Source: Orbicella franksi
Taxonomy: Eukaryota
Assembly (NCBI GenBank): GCA_964199315.1
Contig: OZ116698.1
Location: forward strand, 24,552,001-24,616,000
Direction: 5' to 3'
DNA: 64,000 nt
Position numbers and translations under genes: made by a program. The notes under the pieces were generated by a model that saw only the letters and a list, made by a program, of their open reading frames with translations, had not been told where the DNA came from and ran no database searches. Below, piece after piece: positions 12,301-63,379 of this stretch (the stretch's first letter is position 1; every line of letters begins with the position of its first letter).

Positions 12301-15245
12301 GAGTACTTGAGTGAAAAACATGTTTGGTCCCCAAACATTCCCATCAATTTTTCCTCAACACCCACCCCTTTGAACTCTACGAAAGTGTCCGAATATTCTT
12401 CAAGTGATAAAAATTTGTGGTTACTGTACATGACACCTTATTGATAAAATGTTCAATAAATAATGCTGACAAAACTGTACTTGACTAACATATAGCCATT
12501 GCTCTGTTTGTCCATTTTTTCCCTAGATGTGGACTAACCCATACCTTACATGGGATCCTAAGAAATATGGTGGGATTAAACAGATCAATATTGATCCAAA
12601 GTTAATTTGGAAACCAGACATCATCCTTTACAACAAGTAAGCTACGATAATTCCATCACTTGATCAAACCTCCCCACTAATTAGGCGTAATTGATATGCG
12701 CTTCAAGTTGTTTTCAAATGGGTATTCTTTTCATCTTTTTTCATCTTTGCAGCTTTGTAAAGATTAAAAAAACACGTTTGCAATTCGACAGCAGTTTTGC
12801 TGGTGAATTTAGCTGGGTCTGATGTATATTCTGACGTAAATGTCGATTCAAATAATGGTTGTTACCGTCAAAATGTTCAACTTGAACTCGATCGCCAGCG
12901 CTGATTTCCGTTTCGCAAACGGTCGATGCCATTCTTAACGGTCGATGCCATCATTGGTAACCAAGCCTTTCAGAATGAACGACGCCCTATCTGCATTAAT
13001 ATAGGCCTGGACAAGGTAGAAACTGGTTTTAATTTGTTGATTGAGTAAAACGCACTCGTCAAATGCTTGATTGTCCATATTCACACTGGTTTGCTTGCGG
13101 TTAGCTTTTATTTGATGGTTGGGGCAACTCTGTCACTAATATTTAATAAAGTCACGTTTTATCATTAAATTTTACGGAGATTTGGCGGAACCTGTCGCGA
13201 AATTGGCATCGACCGTTTACGAAACGGACAAGTGCATCGCCAGCTTCAGTATCTCTGTCAAACTTGAAACGCCAAAAGATCCTTTGAAAAGAAATATTAC
13301 GGTTTCATCCCAAGTGGTTACCAGGCATATAAAGTCTGGTTCCTAGATTGACGACACCAAGACTTCATTAATTACTAGGAAAATTACAACAAGTACCATT
13401 GAGGGATATCGAGTTGTTCAGTGCTAATAACAATCATCTTTTCTTTGTTTTCAAGCATTGGCTATGGTGAAACCGGTGCAATATATACTTTTGACACAAA
13501 GGCAGTGTTGAAGTACGATGGATATACTGAGTGGTTTGCTCCAACAGAGATTCACAGCATCTGCAAGATTGACATTAATTATTTCCCCTTTGATGAGCAG
13601 AGTTGCCCCCTTCGATTTGGTTCCTGGACTTATACAGGTAAAAATGTAATGCTTTGGGATGGAAGTTATTTCCCATCTAGTAAGAAAACAATTTCAAGGC
13701 ATTTGCGTTTACGAGCAGTTTCCAGAACTCCGTCTCAAATGTTACGTTTTACAGTATACCATGAAATAAAAGCTTTCGCCGCAAATAGCATGTTTCGATA
13801 AGCGACGTCAAGGAACAGCGGCTGAATATATGTGTGCGTCTGAACATGTGTGTCGGAAGCACCCGGTCGGAATGACAGTGACTGACAGTAAGTTCTTTTT
13901 CCAAAATCAGCAAACCAACCGAAAGTGATGCCGCTTACATTTATAATTTGGTTTTCGATCATTGATTTCCGACAATGGAAGACTGAAAACTAAATGAAGA
14001 AATGCGCAAATGCAAAGGAAATTTCTCATATGCCGTTCAAAACAGAAAAGAGAAGTACCTCTGGAGGTAGTCCACAATTTCCGAACGAATTTTCTGGAAA
14101 TTTCCCGATCCAGTTGACTTTCGACCGAAACTAAATGATACATGAATCTGAACTCAACATCACATTTTCCGGTTTTCCCATTTCGTTTCATTTCATTTCG
14201 AGCTTCAGTGCACCGAAAATAACCCCCTTTCGCACACGCGCTGCCACTTAGGCTCCGAGCTATCCGCATTCTTTAATCAAAGTGAGTTAAGCTACGTTTG
14301 TCGTTTTTTAACCTTTTAGGTAACAAGCTGAACCTTACCAAAAAACGTGATTCTGCAGATCTCCTCGACTACACAGTCAGCGGCGAGTGGGAATTGCTGG
14401 AGGCACCTGCGAAGCGCAATGTGCAGCTGTACAGCTGTTGCCCCCATCCCTTTATCGACATTACATACACAATCCATGTCAAACGCAGAGTGCTCTTCTA
14501 CATGATGAACCTCATCATTCCGTGCATTGTCCTGGCTGTCTTGACGGTTTTCTCGTTCTATCTGCCGCCAGAGTCAGGTGAGCGCATGGGCCTGGTCATA
14601 ACCATTCTCCTGGGTTTGACTGTGTTCATGATGGTTTTCACAGAGAACGTACCGCGCACCTCGGAGGTGACTCCACTCATTGGCAAATACACGGTGACAG
14701 TCCTGGTGCAGGTTACTGTAGCCCTACTCATCACGTGCTCTATTCTGAGAGTTTATCACCGTGATCCAGAAAGGAAGATGCCTGCCTGGTTCCGCAAGCT
14801 CATTCTGGATATCTTAGGCCCAATGCTGCTAGCCATACCGTCAGAGGAACGAGCCAAGATGAGAGAAGACGACAAGGACAAGAATATCTACATGAGGAAA
14901 GCGCAAGGACTTCCCTACGAAATCCACCCTAGTCAGAATCATATGGTAGTTTCCATGCCAAAGATCGCAAGCGCAAAGAAAAGTGACACGGAAACCGACA
15001 GCAAATGTTTCCACACGTCACCCTTGGGATCTAACATGTCACTCACACCATCGGACGAGCGAATGGAAGAAATCGTTTTTGGCATGCGCGCTATCGTTTC
15101 TCACTTGAAAGACACGCAAGAGTCAGATGCAAAGATCAATGACTGGCATCACGCAGCCGCAGTTCTGGACATCGCATTCTTCTGGATCACGGCCATCACT
15201 ATCTTGGGATCCACACTAGCGTTCTACTTTATGATTCCAAAGTAA
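9334..15245 (+). CDS. nAChR alpha-type subunit, gene 2, ~500 aa; exons 9334-9430, 11053-11195, 11715-11759, 12527-12636, 13456-13637, 14320-15245 (exon 3 acceptor reads AC, not AG)
   Basis: Exons sum to 1503 nt in frame. WKPDIILYNN, CKIDINYFPFDEQSC, GSWTY, YSCCPHPF and M1-M4 are present. Exon 1 is homologous to gene 3 exon 1 (...VVTSQG|gtag). The exon 3 acceptor is non-canonical (caacac|GAC). Confidence 0.88.
9991..10016 (-). mobile_element. Probable 3' tail of a LINE-type retroelement: AATAAA followed by (TTACTG)3 on the minus strand
   Basis: The plus strand shows (CAGTAA)3 at 9991-10008 and TTTATT at 10011-10016. The element body could not be identified. Confidence 0.35.
12906..13229. repeat. 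26-bp inverted repeat pair (2 mismatches) in intron 4 of gene 2; MITE-like
   Basis: ttccgtttcgcaaacggtcgatgcca (12906-12931) versus tggcatcgaccgtttacgaaacggac (13204-13229). Confidence 0.7.
14033..14130. mobile_element. Remnant of a palindromic MITE-like interspersed repeat
   Basis: Central palindrome TACCTC-TG-GAGGTA at 14056-14069 with ttccgaacg/ttttctggaaa flanks. The family resemblance is recalled, not searched. Confidence 0.4.
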
Positions 15246-24100: not shown

Positions 24101-25122
24101 TGGCTTCAAAGTGAGCTAAATACCTGCCTCTGCATCACAGTGTGATAAAAGCTTACACAAAAAATGCAACTTATTTTTTCTTTCTTTGCAAAATAGGTAA
24201 CAAGCTAAACCTTACCAAAAAGCGTGACTCCGCAGATCTCTCAAAATACACTGTCAGCGGCGAGTGGGAATTACTAGATGCACCTCTGAAGCGCAATGAG
24301 GAACTCTACAGCTGTTGCCCCCATCCCTTTATCGACATCACATACACAATCCATGTCAAACGTAGAGTGCTCTTCTACATGATGAACCTCATCATTCCGT
24401 GCATTGTCTTGGCGGTCTTGACGGTTTTCTCGTTCTATCTGCCGCCTGAGTCAGGTGAGCGCATGGGCCTGGTCATAACCATTCTCCTGGGATTGACCGT
24501 GTTCATGATGGTTTTCACAGAGAACGTGCCGCGCACCTCGGAGGTGACTCCACTGATTGGCAAATACTCGGTTACAGTCCTGGTACAGGTCACGGTTGCC
24601 CTAGTTATCACGTGCTCTATTCTGAGAGTTTATCACCGTGATCCAGAGAGGAAGATGCCTGCCTGGTTCCGCAAGCTCATCTTTGATATCTTAGGTCCAA
24701 TGCTGCTAGCCATGCCGTCAGAGGAACGAGCCAAGATGGCACGAGACGACAAGAACAAGAATTTCTACGTGACAAAAGTGCAGGGAAATCCTTACGAAAT
24801 CCACCGCAGTCAGAATCATCTTGTAGTTTCCATGCCAAAGATAGCGAGCCCAAAGAAAGGCGAGACAGAAACTGACAGCAAATGTTTCCACACGTCACCT
24901 TTGGGATCTAACCTGTCACTCACACCATCGGACGAGCGAATGGAAGAAATCGTTTATGGCATGCGTGCTATCGTTTCTCATTTGAAAGACACGCAAGAGT
25001 CAGATGCAAAGATCAATGACTGGCATCACGCAGCCGCAGTTCTAGACATCGCGTTCTTTTGGATCACGGCCATTACCATCTTGGGATCCACACTGGCGTT
25101 TTACTTTATGATCCCAAAGTAG
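18195..25122 (+). CDS. nAChR alpha-type subunit, gene 3, ~500 aa; exons 18195-18294, 20533-20672, 21134-21178, 21940-22049, 22863-23044, 24197-25122
   Basis: All introns are GT-AG and the CDS sums to 1503 nt. Signal peptide MRSGMVMDAPDSRRCFMILVTLIVLLLEVVKSQG; all nAChR hallmark motifs are present; close paralog of gene 2. Confidence 0.93.
21495..21592. repeat. ~100-bp fold-back (hairpin) element in intron 3 of gene 3
   Basis: Outer arms tataattgaaggatttc / gaaatccttcaattata are perfect. Inner arms aaaaagggcgtatatc / gatatatgcccttttt have 1 mismatch. Confidence 0.85.
23440..23461. repeat. 22-bp perfect palindrome TAACATGTAAGCTTACATGTTA
   Basis: Read directly; lies in intron 5 of gene 3. Confidence 0.9.
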
Positions 25123-31000: not shown

Positions 31001-34000
31001 GACATTGTCTTCTCTCTCTTTCCCGATTTATATTTCACAGGGAAAAACGAAACATTTAGCAAAGTATATCAGTTGTAATGCCTTAGTATAGTAAAGATAA
31101 CGTTAGTGTTCACCTTCTGGACCTAGAGCAATGGACCTTTTCAGCGGTACGGCGGCCATTTTGAATTATTTTGTTTTAAATAGCTATTATGGGATGCTCA
31201 GGAGGCAAACCTTTTTTTCTTTTTAATTTTTTTTTCTTTATTCTTTTTAAATGCTACTTACACTACTTACAATACAATATTAATGTAGTTACTTACACTA
31301 CTTACAAAAAACTTATTACTTACGCCACTTACGATACTAACACTTACTCTATATAATACGCATACTCACGCTACTAACAATACTAATACTTACACTGCTT
31401 ACAATACAACATAATTAGATTACTTGCCCTTCTTACAATTCTAGCACAGCAAGATCATACCAGTTTACTCCTGTCACTAATGTACATTCCGAGTTGCAAA
31501 TTACAGAAAATATGCATGGTATATATATATGCGCCTTGTTTCTTTTCCTTTCATTTTTATTTTCGTTTTCAGGGGACTAGGGTCGAGTTGTCAAGAGATT
31601 ACAAAAGAGGCAACAGAGGCTCCCACTTTTTTAAAACGATTGTAGTTGTATTTTTTTCCATTTCATAGATATGTTTTAAATACAGTAAGAAATCATTTAG
31701 TTTTGGAGAACATTTTTTCTGTCTACATAGCCAAATGTAATATTTAGCATTTAAGCAGCAGAAGTTAATTTGGAGTTTATGTTTAGAGCTATCCGGCCTT
31801 AGGCCCAGTGCTGTATCAGGCTCTAAGGGTGTCTCCTTGGTAATAACTTGGCAAGACTGTAGCCATACTTCAAAATTGTTCCAAAAATATTGAGTTTTTG
31901 GGAAAGCCCAAAATATATGTACAAGTTTCTCTGTTTCTCTTTCGCAGAAAGTGCGTTTCTCGCTATCGACGAGACCAATTTTTTTCAAGAAGTTGTTTGT
32001 TGATATTCTTCTATGAAGAAATTTAAAATTGAAAGTTATAAGTTTTGTGCTCTTTGTACATTGAAAAGCCATTTAGTAAACCTTTTTCCAGTTGAGCTCT
32101 TGTTTTGTTGTGAGAGTGACGTCTTCCTGCCACTTTTGTTGACTTTGATTGGGTGGTTCACTTTTTCCTGATACAAGTTTCTTATATACTAGTCTACTAG
32201 GTTTTCTGCTTTTTAAAAATTTTGACAAGAAACTTTCATGTTTAATAGAGGTTCTGATGTTATGGGGTATATATCTTTGAAGAAGTTTTATTGAAGAAAT
32301 GATTCCAAGAAAGGTTAAAGGTCGGGCTGTCAGGTCATGTATAGTCTGGAAAGCAGTGAGCGAGAGAAACTTTCCGGAGTCATCCATTAAATGTTCTACA
32401 TTTGTTATTCCTTTGAGGAACCATTCTTTAAAAAACGCTGGTCTATTCCCAACTCTTATTAGTGAATTATACCATAAGGGCGATGACCGAAAGTGATAGT
32501 CTGATACAATCTTTTCTTCATAATTGGCTTCTGACCAGATTTCAAGAATTTCTTTGAAAAAAGGATCTGATACTTTAATAATGTTACGACTGTGTTATTT
32601 CACCTCCATATTTTTCAAGTTCTGAGTCAAAAAATCTTTTCCAGCTTCCATTGTTTTCCTTATCTAGATACTTCTTTATCCATGTGGCTTTGAGAGATCT
32701 ATTAAAGGAGGTTACATCAATCATTTTAAGTCCCCCTTCTTAGTAATCATTAATCATTACCTTTCTTTTTATTTTGTCGCCTTTGTCATTCCATAAGAAG
32801 TTGTAAAACATTACATTTATCTCCTTTATTGCTGTATGATTTGTTTGCAGAGGAGAGAAAATATATACCAGTTGTGAAGCTATGAGGCTTTTTAAAACAG
32901 TAATTTTACCTAAAAGGCCAAGTCTGCGAAGTTTCCAGCATCCCAGAATCGATTTAATTTTTTCTATTTTATCTTTGTAATTCAAAGATATAGTTACATC
33001 AGGGTCTGTTGACAACCATACCCCTAACGCTCTGACTTTTTTTTTTGGCCATTTGAAGTCTTTTTCAGGGCAAAGTTTAAAATCCCAATCCGCACTTGCA
33101 CCGATCCACAAAGCTTCTGTCTTTTTGCTGTTAAGTCTGAGGCCGGATATATCACCGAAATAGTCTATTATCTTCAAAGATTCTAGAAAGGATTCTTCGG
33201 AGCCGTCTAAAATAAGGGTCGTGTCATCTGCATATTGGCTAAGTTTAATTTCTTTGTCCTTTACAATTATGCCACGGATTTCTTTTTTTTGGCGAATTGC
33301 ATTGGCGAGTACTTCCACAGAGAGAATGAATAGATACGGTGACAGAGGGCAACCTTGCCTGACTCCCCGGTTGAGCTCAAAGAAATTACTTGCCCATCCA
33401 TTGTTTAAAATACAGCTTTCGCTATTGCAGTAAAATACTTTTAACCAGTTCAGCAGTGATGGGCCGAAACCAAAGTATTGGAAGGTTTTACGAATAAAGG
33501 GCCACTCTAGGGTATCAAAGGCTTTTTCAAAATCAAGAAAAAGGAGCAGTCCCGGCATATTGTTTGCTTTTGAAAATTTGATGACGCTGTCTATTAAACG
33601 AATATTTTCTCCGATGAATCTGTCTCTAATGAAGCCGGTTTGATCGTCAGAAACAAGTTTTGGCAGGAAAGTTTTGATGCGGCTTGCAATAGCTTTTGTT
33701 GCAATTTTGTAATCGCAATTCAAAAGCGTTAAAGGTCGCCAGTTCTTTATTGAATTAAGGTTAGCATCCTTTTTTGGTATGAGCTTAATAATGCCCCTCC
33801 TTTGTGATATTGAGAGCTTTTCAATTTCGTAGGAATAATTAAAAGAGTGTATCAAAATTTCCGCCACGTCATTCCAAAACACTTTGTAGAATTCGCAGGG
33901 GAGACCATCGGTTCCTGAGGATTTATCTGTCACCATACTTTTCAGCGCTTCTAAACATTCATTCTTCCTTAATTCGCCCTCACAGAGAGATTGTTCATCG

Positions 34001-37000
34001 TTATTTAAAACCTTTTTGTTTCCTTGCTGTGGAAAGAAGAAAGCCCCTTCTTGGTTGTCAATAGCTACATTAGAACTGTAAAGATTTTGGTAAAACGATT
34101 CACATTCTTTTAAGATCTCTTTGTCTGTACAAATGAGGTCGTTGTCACTGACTTTGAGCTGGGTTATTGTTCCTTGTTTACAATGTCTCTTTTCCAGATT
34201 GAGAAAGTATTTGGTATTTTTCTCACCTTCATTGTACCATTGAGATTTAGATCTTAAAATTGCTCCTTTTGTCCTGTATTCTATTATTGCCGCCAGTTCG
34301 CGTTTCTTTGTTTCAAGGTCCGACCACACTTGTTCTCGTCGAGTTTCGTCGCCACTAAATTCAGGAAGACGTTTTTCAAGAGTTGCGATTGCTTGTTCTA
34401 TTTCCTCCTCTTTTCTAGCGAGTTTTTTTTTTCTTAGAAGTTCCAGATTTCAAGGACTCCTCTCTCACTTTCAATTTAACCATTTCCCATAGTAAATTAG
34501 GGTTAACAGTATCATCTTGCACGTATTCAACCTTGGTTTGTTTTATGATTGATTTTATCCGATTAACATACTCAATGTCATTTAAAAAAGAGGTGTTAAG
34601 TTTCCAAAAGCCTCGTCCTCTATTGTTAGAATGCAGCGAGATTTGTAATGTAATCATGGAATGATCCGTTTTGTATCCTGGTAATATGTCCGCACTGACG
34701 GTGTTACAAAATGTAGTCTGATTTACTAGGAAAAAGTCGAGCCTACAGTGAACTTCAGGTTTCTTTTGTCGCCACGTGAATCTGGAACTCTCAGGGTTTA
34801 AAACTCTCCATGCATCTATTAAATCCAGGTTTACAGAGAAATCGTTTATCACTTCCAGCGATTTTTTGTGGGATCTGGCAAGACCACCTTTTTTGTCCTT
34901 GTCAACATTCAGTACTAGGTTAAAGTCTCCACCAACAATTATCTCCTCGCATTTAAAGTCGAGTAGCTGATTAAAAACAGAGGTGAAGAAATTCGGATCA
35001 TCTTCGTTTGGAGCGTATATATTTGCTAAGGTTATGTGTTTTCCATTTGTAATCAGGTCACATATTATGAATCGTCCCTTGGGATCGGTGTAAGCTTTCA
35101 AGAGCTGAAAACTGAAATTATTGTTAAAAAGTATGGCTACACCTGCTTTGTTACTAGAACAACAGCTGAATAATGCCTGGTAACCCCATTCAGCTCTCCA
35201 ATCATGTATATTGTCTTCCGTACAATGGGCTTCTTGGATAAAATATACCGACATTTTTTTACATTTGAGCCAGTTGAAAATTTCACGTCTCTTAAACTTG
35301 TCTCCTAGTCCCCGAGTATTAATCGATCCTATTCTGAGATCCATTTTTCTCATATATTTTGTTAAAAATAATTTGATCGAAGGCGCTCAAGTGCATTGCT
35401 GAAATAAACCTTGAAAGTGTAAGCTGGCAAAATAAATCAAAAATACGAATATTTACATATCTACACATAAACACACTTAAAATCAATAATATTAGAAGAC
35501 TGCTGATGGAATACGGTTGCATTCGTTACTTTGTTCGTATTTTTCATTTTAGAGCCGCCTAATATTAGTTCTAGATGTAGCGGAGGCCGAATCTATCAGG
35601 CATAATAATAACAACAACAAAAAATAGAAAACTATGTATGGACACATTATACTTACAGTTCAAGTTCCTTACCCAAAGGCCAAAATTTACCTCGGACGAA
35701 CAGCTTGTCGGGCTGTGCCTTGCTAAATGAAGCCGGGATGTTGTTTCTCTTGGCCTTCTTAAAGGTATCCATTTGTGCCCTCCGCCGCTCCACGATCTCA
35801 AAAGGCAGATCTTGATACATCTTAAAATTGGTTTCTCGCAGTCGGGGACCTAAAGCGAGCAAGCTTTGACAATCCTTGAATCTCAGAAATCTTGCTAGAA
35901 TAGGCCGCGGTTTCCCTTCTTTCTTCTTACCAAGGCGGTGGACTCGTTGGATTTCTACCGAGGCAGCATCAACATAGCCAAGATCCCTTTCGAGGAAAGA
36001 ACGTAGCACCAATTCCGTATCTTCTCTGCTCGCGTCGTCCTCTGGAATGTTTTCGAATTTCAAATTTTCACGCCTAGAGTAGGCTTCAAGATACAGGTGT
36101 TGGTCTTCTACTTCTTTAACTCTGGCTCCAAGCTTAAGGTTCTCCTCCTCCAGGCTTTTTAACTTCGTGTTGGTATTATCTTGCATTTTTTTTAGACTCT
36201 GCGAAGCTTCTTGGCGATCTGCTTCGATTGAATTTAAGCTCTCTTTAATATCATCAACATCGCGTCTTGTGGTGGCGTGACAGCTCTCTAAATTTTGCAC
36301 ACGTCCTTCAAGTTTCAAAAGAGTCGCTTGAAAATCTTTCATTGATTTTTTAATACTGTCCAGTTTGTCTAGCTTCTTTAAAATGTTTTGAAGTGTGTCG
36401 CTAAACTCTTCGGTCATATTCAAGGCCGGTAAACTTACGTCTTCTTCTGTGTCTAGCTCGCTTACTTCATGGACACGAACAGCGTGCTCGCCGCTTTTCA
36501 ATTTTTTGCTTTCTGGAGAAGCGTTCGATATCGAAGATTCGTCTGACGAAGACACTCTAGTTTTCCGTTTGTTCAGTGTTTCCTCCAGAGTTTCGGCCAT
36601 TAAAATCCGCAGAGCAATTGAATTTAAGGCGAGCGGCTTAAGAAAACACGTCTCACTCCGCCATTGCTCCCCAGTCTTCTCCTTTTTTTCGGCGAGCCTA
36701 TCGTTTTGGCTATACAAATAAGATCATTTTGATATCTGATGTTATAAAGAATGGGGACAGTGATCTTTTCAAAAGAATCACAAGTGACACTGGCCATGTA
36801 TTATATGACTTGCTCCCACCCAAACGTAACAGAGCTCTTAGATAAAGGGGCCATGACTTCATACTCGCTAAAGTAAAAACGGAACGATTCAAACGGGCTT
36901 TTGTAAATAGATGTCTTTTTAAATTTATTTCTTAAAATTTTTCTTGTAATACATATGATAGGTTTTTTCTAGTTTAGCTTAGTTTGTTATTGATTGTAAA

Positions 37001-38885
37001 GCCACACGTATGTTGTGACTGATTTCTTAATAAAGACTTCTAACTAACTAACTAAATTAGCGAGTTGCCTCAGGCTTCTTCTCATTTCTAAAGTGGCAAA
37101 TTACCAGTTGACTCTTCTGTTTTTGTTTCAGTCCTGGGAAAACCCCTTCTTGAGATGGAACCCAACTAAGTATGGCGGTGTAAAATTTATCAACATCGAC
37201 CCGAAGCTTGTTTGGAAACCCGACATTGTTCTTTACAACAGGTAAAAATGTTTCATCCGACATCCAGTATAGGAGGATGACAGAGGGAGCCCATGCTAGT
37301 TATTTGTTATTCGGTTATATTTAGCTCCATAGCCAGTAATAAACTATTTTTATCCGCTTTGCAACTCTGGGACTCGTACCTTATTCAGTAAGAATTTGAA
37401 CTGAATCTTAAGGGGAAAACCTTTGGCAGATTGATAATTAGTTATGAAGATGATGCCCGGCAAGCGTCGAATGTCAAGTTGTAAAGATAACTGTCTGGCT
37501 TTGCTGGGGACTTCTTTCCCCACCTCATTTTCTAGCTCTTCATTGACTATTAGGTCTGCTTCTCTTTACAAAAACAGCTGTAAATTGTTGTTGTCGACGA
37601 GAACTCTTTATTTTAACGACACCCAAGATTTTATAACCATACATGAGACGATTATCGTCTTCTCTTGAAGAGAAGACGTTATAGGCTCGCACTGCGTGCA
37701 GACGACGGTGTTACAGACATGCAATGACATTTGATGTTTTGATAGACATGTAACCATTTGATATGTTGTTTTCTAATATTTTTATTAACTGTCTTTTCGT
37801 TACCGTGCAGCATTCAGAGCGACAGTGGTGAAATGTACAAGTTCAACACAAAAGTTGTTATAAACTACAATGGCTCGTGTCAATGGTATGCCCCGACCGA
37901 AGTAAAAACCGTCTGCAAAATCGACATCACGTACTTTCCTTTCGACGAGCAGCGCTGCACCATGGTGTTCGGCTCATGGACGTACACCAGCGGTTCTTTA
38001 AACCTAAAGCTCGCCCGAGAAGAAGTGGATTTATCGGGCTACATTGTCAGTGGTGAATGGGATCTGGTGAAAGCCGAGGCCGTGCGTAATGTGGTTAAGT
38101 ACAGTTGCTGTCCAGATCCGTTTATAGACATCACTTACTCAATACTTCTGCGCAGAAGGGTGCTCTTTTACCTTAACAATTTGATCTTCCCCTGCGTTGC
38201 GCTCGCGATTTTGACGGTGTTTGCGTTCTTCTTGCCTCCCGAGTCCGGTGAGAGAATCTCGCTGATCATAACGATTCTCCTGGGCTTGACTGTATACACA
38301 CTCATATTCACAGAAAACATACCACCCACTTCAGAAGTCACGCCGCTGTTGACTAAATATTCCACCGCCATAATGGCTTTGCTAGGTTGTTCACTGGTTG
38401 TCACATGCCTGGTTTTGTGGATTTATCATCGTGACACGTCAGTAAAGATGTCTACAACCTTCGAATTCTTCGTCTTCAAAGTTCTTGCTAAAATCCTTAG
38501 GGAAAATCCTGAATCGGAACAAACCCCAAAAGATCCACCAAAACGAAAATATACTCCGGTGACTTTGGTCGCAGACCGCTGGCCAACGTACTTTCCCGTA
38601 CAGCGACGTAAAACATCAGAAAGCGGAAATTCAAGTCCGCAAAGCCGCTCGCCGAATGGTGCTCCCCAAGAATTCGTGTTTCCCGCGCAAATGGAGCGTA
38701 AAATGGATCAAGTTATCGCCAAGCTCGATGCAGTTGCGAACTCTTTGACAGTTGATCAAAGTGAAGAAGAAAAGAAAAAGAAATGGCAGGCAGCTGCCCA
38801 AATCATCGACAAAATTTTCTTCTGGTTTTTCACAATAGTAGTTATCACAGTGACTGTTGTAATGTACTTTATGATCCCTTCCTAA
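28082..38885 (+). CDS. nAChR alpha-type subunit, gene 4, ~476 aa; exons 28082-28142, 30408-30547, 30920-30964, 37132-37241, 37811-38885
   Basis: GT-AG introns with consistent phases; the CDS sums to 1431 nt. Exon 1 MTHSGLLFVLVIAACHKVFR (putative signal peptide, least certain). EVRPV, WKPDIVLYNS, CKIDITYFPFDEQRC, GSWTY, YSCCPDPF and M1-M4 are present. The 6.2-kb intron 3 is occupied by a LINE. Confidence 0.9.
31599..35353 (-). pseudogene. LINE ORF2 (endonuclease-reverse transcriptase), disrupted
   Basis: APE motifs SINTRGL, QEAH, GGDFN, DFFL, TDH; RT motifs WRPLTLLNCDYK, DFEKAFD, QGCPLSP, YADD. Lesions: +1 frameshift in an A10 run (34423-34432), TAA at 32740-32742, frameshift or deletion near 32595, TAA at 32073-32075. 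Confidence 0.93.
35653..36600 (-). CDS. LINE ORF1p (L1-type: coiled coil, RRM, CTD), 315 aa, uninterrupted
   Basis: From MAETLEETL. Heptad-rich region followed by LEAYSRRENLKFENIPE and RVHRLG..KPRPILARF, typical of L1/Tx1 ORF1. The ORF-track start at 36717 lies outside the TSD-defined element. Confidence 0.88.
   Translation of the reverse strand: MAETLEETLNKRKTRVSSSDESSISNASPESKKLKSGEHAVRVHEVSELDTEEDVSLPALNMTEEFSDTLQNILKKLDKLDSIKKSMKDFQATLLKLEGRVQNLESCHATTRRDVDDIKESLNSIEADRQEASQSLKKMQDNTNTKLKSLEEENLKLGARVKEVEDQHLYLEAYSRRENLKFENIPEDDASREDTELVLRSFLERDLGYVDAASVEIQRVHRLGKKKEGKPRPILARFLRFKDCQSLLALGPRLRETNFKMYQDLPFEIVERRRAQMDTFKKAKRNNIPASFSKAQPDKLFVRGKFWPLGKELEL
36681..37055 (+). mobile_element. 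5'-truncated CR1/L2-type LINE 3' fragment with (CTAA)4 tail
   Basis: Translates as RAYRFGYTNK...DLFKRITSDTGHVLYDLLPPKRNRALR*RGHDFILAKVKTERFKRAFVNRCLF, resembling the CR1/L2 ORF2 C-terminus. Followed by AATAAA at 37029-37034 and CTAA repeats at 37040-37055. Confidence 0.75.
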
Positions 38886-48800: not shown

Positions 48801-51349
48801 GTATTCAGTGATTAACGTATTTTTAAGTACCCTTGTACTACATAACAGTGGAGGTTATGAAAGCTATTTTCACTGACATTTTTCTTCCTTTTCCCTGCAG
48901 CCATGCAAAGAAACCTTTCTGAGTTTCATTACTTTATATAGTCTCAGCATAAACATTTCTGTACTGATCGAACACTTCATCCTCTTTTTCGTTTTGCTCG
49001 GTTGATTTTAGTAACCTTGTTTGTGTGTTTCTCAGCCGTTTCTCAGGCTGTATTCCTGACCAGCGACCACATAAATCGTTGGCGTTTTTCAAATATTTTG
49101 AAATGAAGCAAATACACTGGTAGATTTTTGTCGGAGATAGAACGTTCGGTCGAAAGCCCAAAGTGCTTTAAGATATATGGCTTTGAGCGGCACGTACACA
49201 GGATATATTTGAAGGCGATAACCTATCACTGTACCACTATCAGCAAGATATTTGCTTTAAGCTCCCGTACAAAACAATTTGTTGGTGCTTCATGATCGAG
49301 TGATTTCCTGCATCAAAACAGTTCCTTCATTTATTAGACCTGCTTCAACGAGTTCACGTGTGGTTGGCAATCCACACTTCACCGTTTCTTAAACGTCTCA
49401 CGTAGTTTCCTGACTTTCTAGCAAAGCTAAAAACGGAAACTAACAATTTCTTCGTGTTTTGTTCGACCGTTTCAACCGGTCAAAACAACAGCTTTCACAT
49501 TCAAAGTAAACTACGCTTGATTGCTTTTGGTGAGAGCGGAATGTAGACGAAGTAATCCTGTAGATCTTATCCACAGATTGTCATCGAAATAAAATGAGCC
49601 TTAAATATATTTGGTTGCCATTCTTCATTGTTATCAATAATTTAAATTTTTATAATGCCAAGCTTCTTTCACAATTGTGTCCTTGAGTATGATCATTTCT
49701 GCGCGGTTTCCGTTGTTTCATGATCTGTTTGACTCTCGCCAAAATAAAGGTGCCAGAGTGAAACGCATGGCGCATGACCAAGTGCAATCCAAAATTGCAA
49801 ATTACGTCACCGTTACCTGTTCGTGGAACGAAAACATGTAAAATACGACATGTATAAACTGTTATGGCGTTGCTTTTAATCCTCTCAACAAAATTGCTCC
49901 TGGTAGCGAGTTTCGTTCAAACGAACGTGGTAGAATCTGGGAGATGCGCGATTTATTAGGCTTATAGCGTAATCGTTTTCGTTTGAAACGTGGCTGAAGC
50001 GAGTTACGCGAAAGGATAATATTACTTGAAATAATACTGCGCTTTCCTAAGGTCAAGAAGATTACACAATCTTCTCACAATATACACACAGACTGTTATC
50101 AGCTTCCAATGTCTAACGAAAAAGTCTGTTGCTTTGACACGTAACTTTTTTTACGTTCAAATACGCTCAATAGAATGCTAATACTAGATTACATAATCTT
50201 TTATTCAATTGTGTGTGGTCATGCTTGCAAGACGTGACAGTAAAATCCGCAAAACAGGAGTATTATAAATAATAGCCAACTTGAGCTCCCCCTTTATTTT
50301 GCTTTCGCAATACTGCTCATAAATAAGCAAATTTGAGAAACTACGTAGATGTGTAGAATCGAGCTGATGACTGACGTTAGCGTCATAAAAACGGAAGATA
50401 ATTTCTCGGGGTTATTTATTGAGTCAACGAAACTATTTTTCTTTCTTATGATCCTGTATCCTATATCATCGACTACCATAAATATAACAAACAATTGAGA
50501 CAGTACAGTGAATTTATATTTAGAAAAATACTGGACACGCGCATGAGGAAACTGTTTGGAATTCGTTTCTGACGTGGCAGAATCCTGAGTAACTACTGTC
50601 ACTAGAAAAATACCTTTTGCATTATCTCACGCAGTCTTCTGATTACACAATGTGTAAGGAGTGATAAAGCCCAACTATTCTTCAGATTATATGCTAAATG
50701 TGTTGAAACACAAAGGAAGCACTTCCTTAATTGTGCAAAAAAACCCGACGAAAAGCTTACAATAAACATGCGAAAAGAATCCCAGACAAAGAACACTTCG
50801 TTCGTCACGTAAATTATCGGTCGAATTTTCGTGAAATTGCTAATGAATAAACGATTATCGAAAATTGCCTAGAGGGTCAACCTCCATTAAACATGCTCTG
50901 TCGTCCAACCGTCATATTCTTCGTTCCCAAACGAAAACACCCCACAAACTAAGCCGAGTTTGTCGGCAACATCAGAGATATCCGGGCGTTTTGCTAATAA
51001 ATACCAAGGCTATTGTGTAACAATCAGATTACAATCTCTACTACAACAATAACCGAATCTCTCAACACCGTGAATGGAATATCAATAAACAAGGACACGA
51101 CCACCGGCCAATAATGTTACGCACGAGCTTTTAGTGCTCATTCACTCGAGAACATCGTTGATCCAAAACCCCATCTGAGAGTCAGGAGTTGGGTTGCGAG
51201 TCACGTTTTTCACTAGCGATTACGTATGCCCCCGTTCTTCCTTCTCGCTACCACTCAACACGTAAATATTCGTCGTCTCAGTTTCCATCTGCGCGGCTGA
51301 AAGCGTTGCTGCCCTCAACTGACCTCCTAAAGCCCTTGCGGTAAGACGC

Positions 51350-51357
51350 TATAAATA
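51350..51357 (+). promoter_or_regulatory. TATA box (TATAAATA) of the CITED-like gene; second TATAAAG at 51381
   Basis: Lies ~120 bp upstream of an ATG in strong Kozak context (aaccATGG). Confidence 0.55.
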
Positions 51358-51470
51358 ACTCTCTTGTCAATTGTGACAAGTATAAAGGGAAGTTCATGAA
51401 CACAATACCGTTGTAGCCTCTGAGGAAAGCAACACACCAGCAAGAGACGCACAAGATAAACACAGAAACC

Positions 51471-51854
51471 ATGGCTTTGGTACTCAATAACATCGCTGTT
51501 ACTACCACGACGCCGTCTTTTACAAGACCTATTCCAAGTCCTGGTCCATTTTCGTTCACGAGTGGAAATCCAGCATACAGGTGCTCGGAAGATAGCATTT
51601 TTACCTACTCAAACGCGTACCCAATCCCGCACTGTGTTCACAGGAATGGAGAAAACGAGGTACAAAGTATGAACTTTTTCAACTCAAGCGACCCGAGATT
51701 TGACTCGGTTATTCTCGATGACGATGCCCTCACGTCTCTCATCCTTGAGATGGAACTGGACAAAATGAATGCGTTACCCGAACTACAAGTAGTCAATGCG
51801 GATTTGACAGACTGTAGCGTGTTACCGTCGAACAAGCCACAGCAAACTTCATGA
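51471..51854 (+). CDS. CITED: CITED-family (CBP/p300-interacting transactivator with ED-rich tail)-like protein, 127 aa, single coding exon
   Basis: The C-terminal DSVILDDDALTSLILEMELDKMNALPEL aligns ungapped to human CITED2 [28 protein letters not shown] (13/28 identical by hand, most others conservative). Low-complexity Pro/Ser/Thr N-terminus; TATA, Kozak and AATAAA (52113) context. No 1:1 paralog assignment is made. Confidence 0.8.
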   Translation: MALVLNNIAVTTTTPSFTRPIPSPGPFSFTSGNPAYRCSEDSIFTYSNAYPIPHCVHRNGENEVQSMNFFNSSDPRFDSVILDDDALTSLILEMELDKMNALPELQVVNADLTDCSVLPSNKPQQTS

Positions 51855-52112
51855 TTTTTAAAATGACACGAGGGTTAAAATTCGCTGAAAAGGACAGCGT
51901 TATTCAGTGTTGGAGGAAAATCACAAAGTTTTGTCTCTTCAGGGAACGAATTTATTCATATCCGTGAATTAACCACAAGAATTTGTCAAGTGAACTGCCT
52001 GGGTGAAGAACTCAGTAACGCTGTTAAATTTGAATGTTAAGTTGGATGGACAGATTGGAATATCCTTAGTGACTTGTCACAATTTTGACAATTTTGTAAA
52101 TATAACATGTAA

Positions 52113-52118
52113 AATAAA
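52113..52118 (+). terminator. Putative polyadenylation signal of the CITED-like gene
   Basis: AATAAA ~260 nt after the stop codon. Confidence 0.5.
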
Positions 52119-55100
52119 TGTAAAAAGCTTCATTGTTTTGACCTTGCATGTCTCCAAGATTTACTTGAGACTCAACTGTCACCACATGGCACATAAAACG
52201 CTAAAAGGAAGGCGAGAACAAGCAAATAAGCTGGAGGTCTGGCTGGTTTAGTCTGGCTGTGTGCGTATCTGCTATTCTAATTATATTTTAGTGCATGTTC
52301 TTTGCTTGGCACTGCGTTCCGAATGACTACGATAAGAAACGTCTAGCATCGTAGCTTGGTAGATCGATATCAACTCAAGCTGTTCTGTGTTCCGGTACGT
52401 CACTCTGTCCTTGAGTAGTAATTTATCCCGTGGACATCAAAGGTCAGTAAACAACTAGGACAAAAGATATCATTCAGTTTCACAATCAAGAGTTTAAATT
52501 TTGAAATTTCTCCCTTGTTTTGGACGAGATTAGTAAATTATGCTCGCACCTGTAGAGTATTCTCAGAATTCCCAAACTTTGTCTATAGCATTTCCGGTGT
52601 AGACTGGCTATTCCGCGTAAAAATAACGCGGGAAACACAAAGGCACTGCCTGTCAAAAAGCATGGTGTCGTGAACGATTTTTTGGCACGTTTTTCGTTCG
52701 TCGTGAGCTGAGGCCTGTTTCCGTAATACAAAGAAAACAGGAATAACTAGACCGCAAGTAAAAAATACAGAAATAAATATCTCACATCACGAAACAGAAA
52801 GGTTCCCTCCGTAGTTTCCCGATTTAGCATTCTAATCGAGAATCCCGCGAATCGAATTACCGCTATCTCGACGAAGCCACTCAACTTACAGTTGGGTTCA
52901 AGAGTTAAATTTTATCAAAAAAATACAAAAAATTCCCAACCGCACTATTTATATAGTTGCCTCCCACAAGTTAACGACAGGAATTTTCTTCGACCTTTCA
53001 ACGGAAGGGTCAAACATATTTTTCAAATTCAACTCATCATGGACGTTTCAACCTTGCTCTCTTTGACTCCACCGGTTCACTAAAAATTTCTCAAGGGTCC
53101 TAGAGGGAGGCTTAACTAATCCATGGAGTCTTTCTCCATCCCCCACTTTTCCTTAGACCAGAATATTCTCGACAGAAACAATGTTTAAGGTTTAGTGAGG
53201 TTTCTGTTTCGCAATCATCGCGGTAGCGGGGAATATTTGAGCGAGAGTTCGAAGCGCATCGTCGAATACTAAAGAGACCCCCCAATTGGAAATATACTGA
53301 GCGCGTGTAATTTGACTACGCAAATGTAAAATTCCTTTTGTTTTGTTTTGGTTTCTTTTGTTTCAGAACTAAAACGCAAAAGTCATAAAAGGGTTACAAT
53401 TAGCTGTCAAGTCGAGCATTTTTTTCGAAACTATTAACCTGTTCTAAGACCTCTGCAAAACTCACGACAGAACTTTTTTAGAATAAAATAAAATGCACAT
53501 TCCCCAGCGTGGGAACGTGAAGATACCGAAAGCTGCTTTATTTTCTCAAGATATCTGTCGAATGTCTAAAGCGTCTACAATAATTTCCTGTGAGGAAATG
53601 GTGAGTCTGAAGAAGCGTATCTAAGCAAATCGAGATCTTTTAATACCAATCCACGTTGATCCTTAGCATTAACAAATAAGGAGTTAACATGTACGCAAAT
53701 GAAAACGAAATTCAAGGAACCTCAAGCCAGATTACAATGTACGCAATGCCGTCACAAGACATCTGCTCTGCCTGAGAAACCACATCAACAATAGGCGGAA
53801 GTTAACACTTATCCCAATAATTAGAAAAGCCACGCCACCATTACAAGAATAAACCAACAGGCAAGTTGGAAAGAACTTCGTGTCCCTGAAACAATTCTAG
53901 AAGTTTTTGTTCGGAAAGGAGTTTATAAGCCCTCGTGGGCTCAGTGATTTACGTCGGGCCATGTTGTTAACAAGGGTATACAGGGGTCATACATGGATAT
54001 TTAGGGTTTACCGGGGTATTCATGATATGGGAATTATTCTAGGATATTTTCAAACTCTTAGGGGAGAACAAAGTTGTTCGAAGTAACAGGAGTTCGAAAT
54101 ATCCTATAGTGAATGACTGAAGGATAAATACAAGCAGGGAATGTTCTTTAGTTCAAAATAACGGGGAATTCGAATTAACCGGGTTCGAACCAGCGGTGTC
54201 CCCGGGGCGGAGTCCAACTGTCTTTGCCTCCTTCCACCTCCCCCCATACCCCGTCCCCCACCAACCCAAACAATCAGAAAGAAATGTTGCTCTTCGACCT
54301 CTTCATGCTGCTATGTTACATGGAAATATGCACAGGCGCCAGAGACAGGCGTTATAACTTCCTGTACTGTTAACGGTGTCGTTAAACGCCTGGATCAGTT
54401 CAAGTGTCCTTTCAGAATCCAGCTGTTTGACCAAATACAGTCATTTATGGGTCGGCGGCATTTCACCTTTTACCAAAATAATGCAATTAAGGAAGCTGTC
54501 ATCAAGTCCGAGGCGTCAGAATTACCACGGGATTACCATTGCAGTGTGCCACGACTGCCACGAAAGAGATATTAATAGTGGTGAACAATCCTGAATGTTT
54601 CCTTACAGTTCACCCTACAGTTACGGAGTATTTAATCATCTTCCCGGAAGATTTTGCGTACCATGCCTATAATAAACATGGTAGGGCGACGATCAAAGAG
54701 AGAAAAATATTTCCCTGCGAAAAGGTTCAATACTCATCGGGATTAAGATGGGGGTGGGGCGCCCAATTATTGAAAGCCAGACCATTTGATTTTTCATACT
54801 CTTTACAGACCTGACATTAAGTATAATATGTAGTTGCGTAAACCTGTTATCGACCCCGAACGCAAAAAGAAATATACAGCGTTCGCCCAGAAAAACTCGC
54901 ACGCGGCAGGCTTGAATCTTTTCTGCTTAAGACCTGAGGGACCTGTGACCAGGGTACATTCGTTTACATTTGATTGCGCCAACGTTAACGGGCTTTAGCA
55001 AATACTGCCTTAAGTTTTTTTAGCATGCATCTCTCTCTTCGTGTCTCTGTATTTCCTTTGAAGTCTAAACTGGAAAACTAGTTGATCAAATTAAAATTTT

Positions 55101-61079: not shown

Positions 61080-63379
61080 TCACGCAACATAACCAGGCGC
61101 CTGCAAGAAACATCCGAATACAGTGACAAGCACAGCAATGCCAAACACCCAGAGTGACAGTTTATCCATGACCATGGCTGCTATCCGCCACTCCTCTTTG
61201 TGATTGTTGATCCTGTCGTCGACGACCGAGTTCTCCACAAGTGTGTCAACTCGCTCCAGGATCCTCTCGCCAAGCTGTAGAACAGGATCTTGGAAACCGT
61301 CCTGTTGGTTCAAAGAGATTTCCGACGCGTTCAGCGCTGGTGATACGGACAGAAAACCGTTTGCCGTTGAACTAAGGTGTCTATAATGACTGTCATAGGG
61401 GTTGTTGTTGTGGCTGTTCGACACGTGAAGTTTAGTCCTTGTTTGGTGTGTTCTACCAACCGGTTCCAAAGCCGTTTGAATGGTGGCCTTTCGACCCGTA
61501 TCCTTACGCAGATTAGAATGTTCTTGAATGCGTTTGAGGTTTTCCATGCTAATTCCAAAGAAGTGGCCGAGGTAGCCGAGCACGTATTTTCGGACCCACT
61601 TTGGCATCTCGATGACATCAGAGTGGTAATACTTCAGGATGTAGCACGTCCAGACCAGGCCTACGGCCATTTCAACCATTCCAGCCATGTAGAACTTGGC
61701 GATGAGTGGGACCACATCTGAAGATGGAGGAATTGTTTCCGCTACCACCAACATAAAAACCGTCATGGCCAGAAGGATGGTTATTGTGAGGGAAATACGT
61801 TCACCTGTGAAGGGTAAGGTAACAATCTGTATTTAAATATTGACCTATTTTCTTTTCTTTACTTTACTTTTTGTTCATTTTTAGTTAGCAGGGGCAGCTG
61901 CTTCGTATACTGCTAAAATTTCTTCTCCTGTTACGGTAGGAAACCAAGACACCATCTTGCTTACAACTCTCGCAAGCTGGGAGGTGGACAGCACAAAACT
62001 ATCCCGAGCTTGAGTAGCCAATAAGAATGCGTGAAAAGCACTCTCCACTGATTTGGTATATGCTATATAGATCACGGAGTCCCCTACGGAAACCGTGTAA
62101 AACAGTCTTAAAGCAATTTTCAAACCTTTCTTTTAGTTAAACTAATGCTTTCACCGTGTTGAAGCAAAGACTGTGTGAAGGCTAGGTAGACTGCCCTACC
62201 CTCCCCTCCCGTCCACTCCCAACCACCCGGTTTAACGGTCGCAAAGGAGACCACCATATAGTGGCAGAACCTTTAAGAAAACGAGATTAACTCACCTGAT
62301 TCTGCTGGAAGTACAAAGGATACATTTATCAACACAGTGATGATGACCAGCGGTAATATCAGGTTCATCATATAGAACAGCGAACGCCTTCGGATGATGA
62401 TCGTATACGTCACATCCGGGAACGGCTCCTCGCAACAGAAATACTTCAAAACATTCCGCCGGGCCGGAGCGCCAACAAGTTTCCATTCTGCGCTCTCGAT
62501 GTAATTTCCCAGGTCAGCGGACATGCTCTCATTTGTGACGTCCAGCCGGAAGCCATCGTAAGTCCACGATCCGAATTTCATTTTACAATTCTGTGTGTCA
62601 AATGGGAAGTACTTAATGTCGATGCGGCATTTGCTCTTGAAGGTGACCGGCGAGAGCCATACATTTTTTCCCGAATGATGAAGAACAACCCTGAAGTTCA
62701 GGCGGTCCAAGTTGCCGCCAAAGCTTATGTCGTCGTCAGCGCTGCAAACGAACATGGTTAATGTTAACACCGAGTGTTTTAATTGGCTTCTTCAAACATG
62801 AGAAGAGACAAGAATAGATCTTAATAAATTGACTTACGGTCGGCACACAAGGGGACAATCCCCTTCGTGTGTACGCATAGGACACATATTGCGGGGATAG
62901 AAAGCAAGCTGGTGCACACGAAGACAATATATATTGGCTCATTTCTGTTATAGGAGGGAAGGAAGGGGGGGGGGGGGCAGTTTGCAAGAGAAGGGTACGC
63001 GACGCGACATTGAAAACTGAAATCATCTTGTCCCTACTTCATGACGCACGAATTCAATTTACTTGAATTTTCCGCAATACGTTGCGAGGACAAAAACAGA
63101 GCTCTTTTTCTGGGCGAGCCTTCAGGGACCTAGCATCTTGAAGTTCTCTATCGCCGCATCTAAAATTGAATCTTAGGTGTCAGAAATGACTTTCCTTTAC
63201 AAATGCATTATCGACAAAACAAAATGGATGGGTAAATAAGTACTGGATACACAAAACTCCATTACTCACTTCTCATACAGAACAATATCCGGAAGCCAAA
63301 CATTCTTTGGAGCAACATTAATTGTTGTTAATCCACCATATTCGCTGCTATTCCATGCTAATAGTGGATTATTCCAAAT
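61080..63379 (-). CDS. nAChR alpha-type subunit, gene 5 (5'-partial); exons 63379-63270, 62741-62296, 61804-61080; upstream exons not found in the window
   Basis: GT-AG introns with consistent phases (2,1). VWLPDIVLYEN, CRIDIKYFPFDTQNC, GSWTY, YFCCEEPF and SGERISLTITILLAMTVFMLVVAETIP are present, ending in M4 ...FLQAPGYVA*. Confidence 0.92.

Follow-up and report, generated by a model that had tools for sequence, protein, structure and literature searches.

A divergent CITED-family gene in the coral Orbicella franksi, with a CR2 module resembling the TAZ1-binding region of vertebrate CITED2

The locus, its transcript and its promoter

The window analysed here is a stretch of 64,000 nucleotides from Orbicella franksi (contig OZ116698.1, positions 24,552,001 to 24,616,000), and positions refer to this window unless another locus is named. 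On the plus strand, an intact open reading frame of 127 codons extends from an ATG at 51471 to a TGA at 51852-51854 (CDS 51471..51854), with the start codon embedded in the Kozak context ACCATGG (51468-51474). A TATA box, TATAAATA, is situated upstream at 51350..51357 (plus strand), where CTATAAATA is invariant in the seven scleractinian loci compared (the window, L011, L013, L015, L018, L019 and L020), and a poly(A) signal AATAAA occurs downstream at 52113..52118 (plus strand), with the same hexamer similarly placed past the stop (+250 to +312) in 7/7 species. The TATA box, Kozak context and poly(A) signal had all been listed in a sequence-only reading of this stretch, and each was found in place.

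Raw stranded poly(A) reads (run X23) cover the plus-strand gene from approximately 51395 to 52140 and are confined to this interval (bins 51370-51436 through 52107-52173), with the 5'-most read starting at approximately 51395, a short distance 3' of the invariant TATA box, and the coverage ending in the bin which holds the poly(A) signal. All first mates map to the minus strand, which by the usual stranded-library convention indicates RNA of the plus strand. No splice joints were seen in the X23 reads over the gene and, together with the stranded coverage, this points to a single-exon mRNA of approximately 750 nt (51385..52140). The stretch is contained in runs from 11 studies in all, including fourteen RNA runs. 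Metatranscriptome contigs span 50737-52666, well past the stranded poly(A) coverage, and this overhang could be derived from DNA carry-over or read-through.

A protein search retrieved twenty-three close relatives (56-96 % identity), of which only those of Desmophyllum pertusum and Oculina patagonica come from named species, both being recorded as "hypothetical protein". In other corals some ORF callers prepend a false N-terminal extension (MTGIKGS...), which results from the conserved promoter sequence GGTATAAAAGGAAG being translated as protein. Pairwise comparison of the window CDS with those of the six other corals gave dN/dS values of 0.05-0.19, with dS values among the seven loci of 0.7-2.6 (saturated), and the low ratios at saturated synonymous sites indicate strong purifying selection on the protein. 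The shortness of the frame, and its status in public records as unannotated or hypothetical, could be taken to suggest that the frame is open by chance or that the transcript is non-coding. Against this stand the dN/dS values at such synonymous divergence, the size of the protein family (about fifty-five members, see below) and the poly(A) transcript, so that this alternative has a negligible probability and can be considered already refuted. The gene is thus real with near certainty.

Approximately 450 bp upstream of the ATG are conserved in blocks across the seven corals, despite the saturation of synonymous sites. The most distal blocks (51000..51095, plus strand) are near-invariant across the seven loci and include TGTGTAACAATCAGATTACAAT (~51016-51040) and GAATGGAATATCAATAAA. 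These are followed by a core resembling a hypoxia response element (HRE), ACGTG on the minus strand at 51202..51206, within the conserved block GAGTCACGT(T/C)T, the aligned position being kept in 6/7 species, and by ATTACGTA(A/T)G, also given as ATTACGTAAG, at 51219..51228 (plus strand). The alignment column of the latter is kept in 5/7 species, with exact TTACGTAA in two. A second CACGT core overlaps the invariant GTAAATATT at 51259..51270 (plus strand; RCGTG core kept in 4/7 species), and GTAAATA occurs at -203 to -229 in 7/7 species. Between the TATA box and the ATG, an inverted repeat, CTTGTCA-ATTG-TGACAAG, is followed by a second TATA-like element, GTATAAAGG (51380-51388), the two together occupying 51363..51389 (plus strand), being conserved in seven species and likely surrounding the transcription start. 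We take GTAAATATT to fit, on the minus strand, the forkhead consensus TRTTTAY and the element at 51219 to be of the PAR-bZIP/D-box type; CACGTT at 51202 is also E'-box-like.

The upstream HRE-like motifs noted in the sequence-only reading exist as the cores at 51202 and 51259, but they are not enriched. The whole window contains 160 such cores against an expected 142±13, which is at background, and the upstream regions contain 1-3 per 600 bp compared to 1.4-2.9 per 600 bp locus-wide. Enrichment was therefore dropped as an argument, and what remains of the motifs is one positionally conserved candidate. The 51202 core could be a HIF/ARNT site without being diagnostic of one, and other bHLH or bZIP factors could use it equally well. 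The block-wise conservation of the promoter suggests tight, multi-input regulation, perhaps linked to stress or to the clock. A review (PMC7360518, citing Bakker et al. 2007) reports that vertebrate CITED2 is induced by FOXO3a.

The CITED-like gene stands isolated, flanked by an array of Cys-loop ligand-gated ion-channel sequences (4999-6243, 14298-15245, 24142-25122 and 37758-38885 on the plus strand; 61080-62770 on the minus strand), the large exons of which match Neur_chan_LBD and Neur_chan_memb with E values down to 1e-44. A LINE-type retroelement is located within this array (32740-36717, minus strand; RVT_1, E 1.5e-40, with an endonuclease/exonuclease/phosphatase ORF).

The CR2 module and its relationship to CITED proteins

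The CITED family is characterised by the CR2 domain (PMC7360518), here taken as a region of approximately 32-50 residues near the C-terminus which combines an acidic alphaA helix, an LPEL motif and a hydrophobic/acidic tail. Residues 76-118 of the coral protein (51696..51824, plus strand) have this composition and position, and are supported by Pfam, PDB and CITED1 profile matches. The parts comprise an alphaA helix at approximately residues 83-98 (the segment DDDALTSLILEMELDKM, residues 83-99), LPEL at residues 102-105 (51774-51785) and a phiC-like tail, VVNADLTDCSVL, at residues 107-118, with the residue count from helix to LPEL being the same as in CITED2.

When the window protein alone was searched against Pfam, CITED (PF04487) was the sole family matched (E 5e-5; residues 58-107 on model positions 136-188), although its 23.9 bits fall just short of the gathering cut-off of 27 bits. 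The Pfam check proposed in the sequence-only reading thus gave a match below the cut-off for this protein, and clear matches for four relatives of a single subgroup, P0177, P0178, P0179 and P0184, which score above it (36.1, 32.5, 31.1 and 29.5 bits, respectively). As these four also match the family profile (E 1e-22 to 1e-32), the window protein is tied to CITED by transitivity. Among thirteen orthologues, eleven matched Pfam CITED and nothing else. In a single-protein search of PDB sequences the best three matches were CITED2 peptides from TAZ1 complexes (1p4q_A, 7lvs_F and 1r8u_A), and the alignment to 1r8u_A spans residues 81-108 without gaps, LPEL included. The 28-residue ungapped match that had been claimed is therefore correct, whereas its description as the C-terminal 28 residues is not, with nineteen further residues, partly the phiC-like tail, following it.

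Profile comparisons gave the same picture. A profile of thirteen relatives matched CITED2 alone in the PDB (E 7e-7). Exhaustive scanning of 1.8 billion cluster representatives with an HMM, together with a profile-based search of 5.8 billion proteins, then brought the family up to about fifty-five members. On reading of the sequences these fall into four subgroups which have three blocks in common, the divergent subgroups B-D being represented by contigs from metagenome or Logan records. All non-family matches up to E 10 in the search of 5.8 billion proteins were Pfam-CITED proteins, nearly all of them named vertebrate CITED1. A 24-member profile matched CITED2 chains only in the PDB (1p4q_A, E 1.5e-8), and hhalign of this profile against twelve vertebrate CITED1 proteins gave a probability of 97.3 % (E 2.1e-11; 40 columns). 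The top matches in a language-model feature search were exclusively CITED clusters (score 0.92; 205-210 of 256 features shared). Residues L102, P103 and L105 are invariant in 24/24 aligned members and E104 nearly so, with LPQL in one. The CITED identity put forward in the sequence-only reading is borne out by these comparisons. Of the three outcomes which that reading named as refuting it, two, the lack of a CITED HMM match and the lack of a transcript, did not occur. It is very probable on sequence grounds that the gene carries a homologous CITED CR2, and we consider the protein a genuine CITED-family member from cnidarians, unannotated and divergent.

Only CR2 is common to the coral and vertebrate proteins. 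CR1 and CR3 were undetectable in this family, the hhalign comparison with the twelve CITED1 proteins aligning the 40 columns of CR2 only. The N-terminal two thirds carry instead two lineage-specific motifs recognised in the 24-member alignment. The N-terminal motif TTTTPSFTRPIPSP (residues 11-24; 51501..51542, plus strand) reads TTTTPS.TRPIPSP across the family, with T14, I21 and S23 invariant and P24 nearly so. The central motif IFTYSNAYPIPHC (residues 43-55; 51597..51635, plus strand) follows the pattern F.Y...YP.PHC from residue 44 to 55, with Y50, P51, H54 and C55 invariant. Neither has a counterpart in the vertebrate CITED1 profile when compared by hhalign. Their probable role is the recruitment of lineage-specific partners or the control of turnover, and they may represent partner-docking or phospho-regulated turnover sites. 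A repeat unit with SPLYPIPHCARTAGGW in P0024, a 555 aa entry of the protein library, gives six or more matches to YPIPHC, the central motif of the family (E 1e-22), which likely reflect a tandem repeat or low-complexity artefact.

No DNA-binding domain was found by Pfam, CITED being the single match. AlphaFold2 with the family alignment produced a model of low confidence (mean pLDDT 56.9, pTM 0.22), in which the sole helix of at least four residues is predicted at residues 84-93, with pLDDT values of 78-79 across residues 81-100. Such a low-confidence chain with one helix is the picture that would be expected for a ligand which is disordered but has a helix for binding, and fits the behaviour of CITED2 (PMC8784115).

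A search of the whole genome with the family profile recovered the window locus (E 1.4e-50) and, weakly, a second site, located on contig 3 (E 0.022; locus L024). The latter holds a CR2-like sequence, VDEGALARLIVEMQLNTLQDLPDL, with LPDL in place of LPEL (L024:1438-1713; G000 contig 3, ~6223449-6223529, plus strand). Its match to Pfam CITED has an E value of 0.008, hhalign against CITED1 gives 75 % (E 2.6e-5), and its top language-model matches are to CITED, at only 0.83. The sequence is present in thirteen RNA runs, and a polypyrimidine-AG stretch resembling a splice acceptor just before its ATG makes it possible that it is an exon of a larger gene. This locus is a lead towards a second CR2-like gene in the genome. 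A third stretch, VDEEMITRLCYALELDKLYVLPDL, also with LPDL and at the end of a 174-aa ORF (L025:1111-1635, plus strand; G000 contig 3, ~7779977-7780078), was set aside as a probable chance resemblance, as it has no Pfam match, an hhalign probability of 46 % and language-model features resembling those of transposon-type proteins.

According to a 2020 review, CITED proteins "are only conserved in vertebrates" (PMC7360518). Our literature search turned up no description of a cnidarian or other non-vertebrate CITED, an apparent match for CITED2 and cnidaria in an Orbicella genome paper being the string "cited2023" in its reference list. The coral orthologues appear in public records as "hypothetical protein", although automatic Pfam matches on several relatives imply that the databases can already see the family.

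TAZ1, the HIF-alpha C-TAD and the proposed mechanism

The window's own genome also encodes candidate partners of the CR2 module. One of its exons is matched by the Pfam HIF-1a_CTAD model at 40 bits, above the cut-off of that model. This is the last exon of the coral HIF-alpha (L002:1024-1608; G000 contig 15, ~1.9218 Mb, plus strand), which contains a CODD-like APFIP motif and the C-TAD. The C-TAD aligns to that of human HIF-1alpha (E 1e-6) and keeps the Asn targeted by FIH and the LLQGEELLRAL helix, but reads FPSL where the human sequence reads LPQL. It has been reported that coral HIF-alpha possesses a C-TAD, that of Stylophora being without three of five residues important for CBP/p300 binding (PMC5695583). 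Hampton-Smith et al. placed the first appearance of C-TAD-like sequences in Cnidaria and observed no hydroxylation of a coral C-TAD by Acropora millepora FIH in vitro (PMC6488082).

The TAZ1 domain of the coral CBP is encoded by two exons on the minus strand of contig 9 (L010:6510-6725 and L010:5886-5996), the intron interrupting a Val codon. Its identity to the TAZ1 domains of mouse CBP and human p300 amounts to 84-85 %, and all differences from the mammalian domains are located in loops or at helix ends. The CITED-like protein, the HIF-alpha C-TAD and CBP TAZ1 are thus all encoded in one coral genome. Apart from the CBP locus at 28.5 Mb, three tandem ORFs on contig 9 (L005, L006 and L007; G000, 2.484-2.512 Mb, plus strand), which are 555, 375 and 403 aa in length, each have a TAZ zinc-finger match above the Pfam cut-off and may represent a lineage-specific expansion of TAZ-domain proteins.

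The fold of the peptide with TAZ1, suggested in the sequence-only reading, was predicted for residues 72-127 with three zinc ions and the TAZ1 of mouse CBP (P0126), as the protein search yielded only unspliced single-exon calls for the coral domain. For this cross-species pair the predicted complex had an ipSAE of 0.48 (runs 0.47, 0.48 and 0.48), compared to 0.01 for the best of three controls, with the runs agreeing in at least 75 % of contacts and a partner pLDDT of at least 60. In the calibration, which excluded riding ligands, peptides and disordered chains, the mark was reached by 51/78 solved complexes and 2/108 mismatched pairs, and the range up to an ipSAE of 0.60 held just five of the 78 solved complexes but all four passing mismatches (of 180). 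Given that a like complex, CITED2-TAZ1, has already been solved, the pass speaks for likeness rather than binding and may reflect memorisation by the predictor and, with the expectation from sequence already high, it shifts the odds only slightly. The prediction thus lends the suggested pairing weak support. The coral CITED-like protein probably binds TAZ1.

We propose that the protein is a divergent CITED member which docks on CBP TAZ1 and competes there with other clients, including the HIF-alpha C-TAD, an explanation to which we assign, as a whole, a probability of about 0.72. An intronless, TATA-driven and polyadenylated gene would give rise to a 127-residue, largely disordered nuclear co-regulator, in which CR2 (approximately residues 76-118) would supply the three elements by which vertebrate CITED2 grips TAZ1 (CH1) of CBP/p300. 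The protein would dock on the coral CBP TAZ1, the helices of which are almost identical to the mammalian ones, and docking would compete with other TAZ1 clients, the coral HIF-alpha C-TAD among them. We infer further that displacement of HIF-alpha from TAZ1 by the bound protein, combined with induction of the gene under hypoxia, might close a feedback loop. The presence of the CR2 module in corals, set against a family described as restricted to vertebrates, implies that a HIF off-switch may be older than has been thought, and such an ancient off-switch, as the sequence-only reading had it, is plausible. A hypoxia-induced role of this kind must nevertheless be regarded as tentative, and falls somewhat short of an even chance. 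Counting against it are the unenriched RCGTG cores, the FPSL of the coral C-TAD in place of LPQL, and the restriction of the likeness with vertebrates to CR2.

Alternatively, a TAZ1-binding short linear motif could have arisen independently in a cnidarian-specific disordered protein, which would then be no homologue of CITED. This would account for a likeness limited to approximately 40 residues within an otherwise unrelated protein, and for the lack of bridging bilaterian invertebrate sequences among the 1.8 and 5.8 billion sequences searched. Convergence would, however, also have to produce three collinear sub-motifs with identical spacing, placed near the C-terminus as they are in vertebrate CITED1 proteins, along with relatives reaching up to 36 bits against Pfam CITED and an hhalign E value of 2e-11 against vertebrate CITED1, and is for these reasons very improbable. 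That no bilaterian invertebrate CITED surfaced in the searches of 1.8 billion clusters and 5.8 billion proteins is no evidence of absence, as the sensitivity of such searches for a 40-residue motif is low.

If CR2 is homologous, the protein may still be mainly a bridging co-activator with no special link to HIF or oxygen, recruited by DNA-bound partners through its N-terminal motifs and bringing CBP/p300 along as vertebrate CITEDs do. The two invariant lineage-specific motifs outside CR2, the RCGTG cores at background and the promoter of approximately 450 bp with its many conserved blocks (forkhead-like, D-box-like, inverted repeat and distal), suggestive of multi-input regulation, agree with such a role, as do the many partners of vertebrate CITED2 (PMC7439111). 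On the other hand, a C-TAD would face competition from any high-affinity TAZ1 ligand that uses the LPEL site, and one HRE-like core is positionally conserved in 6/7 species; we consider the bridging role unlikely as the main one. In a broader scenario, which is rather unlikely, the HIF C-TAD and the CITED protein competing with it would have originated jointly, ahead of the divergence of cnidarians and bilaterians. In stony corals, where the coral C-TAD escaped hydroxylation by FIH in vitro, the CITED-like protein rather than FIH would then serve as the main brake on C-TAD/CBP signalling, and the gene might be driven by forkhead, bZIP or E-box-like inputs that follow the daily cycle of oxygen.

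Should CR2 be genuine, the CITED-TAZ1 module would date to at least the cnidarian-bilaterian ancestor, in agreement with the time at which the HIF C-TAD is reported to have first appeared, or else constitute a striking convergence. The coral CITED CR2, HIF C-TAD and TAZ1 form a short, synthesisable peptide set, with which the evolution of a textbook switch between disordered proteins can be tested directly. The unannotated and seemingly tightly regulated gene is furthermore a candidate modulator of how corals respond to deoxygenation and to the daily swings in oxygen.

Comparison with vertebrate CITED proteins and the CITED2/HIF-1alpha switch

The coral CR2 shares with those of vertebrate CITED1, CITED2 and CITED4 its location near the C-terminus, the acidic alphaA helix, an exact LPEL, a phiC-like tail and the spacing between helix and LPEL. 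As in these vertebrate members, the gene is compact and the protein small, without a DNA-binding domain and predicted to be disordered with one helix. At 127 aa it is nevertheless roughly half to two thirds of their size, lacks detectable CR1 and CR3 and contains the cnidarian-type motifs TTTTPS.TRPIPSP and YP.PHC instead. Within CR2 itself, the residue following LPEL is Q, K, R, H or E in this family, rather than W or F as in vertebrate CITEDs, and the phiC tail is weaker, with fewer aromatics (L112, V117 and L118). An anchor of the LP(Q/E)L type is common to the HIF-1alpha C-TAD (PF08778) and the coral protein, known and predicted disordered ligands of TAZ1, respectively, but their sequences are unrelated beyond these four residues. 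The inactivity of Acropora FIH on the coral C-TAD in vitro (PMC6488082) suggests that the regulatory logic around this domain may differ in corals.

Vertebrate CITED2 binds TAZ1 by means of three coupled motifs, the N-terminal alphaA helix, LPEL and the adjacent hydrophobic/acidic phiC, and removal of LPEL or phiC weakens the binding 250- to 500-fold (PMC8784115, PMC13286877). The three motifs which CITED2 requires for the unidirectional switch with HIF-1alpha (PMC8784115) are all present in the coral protein.
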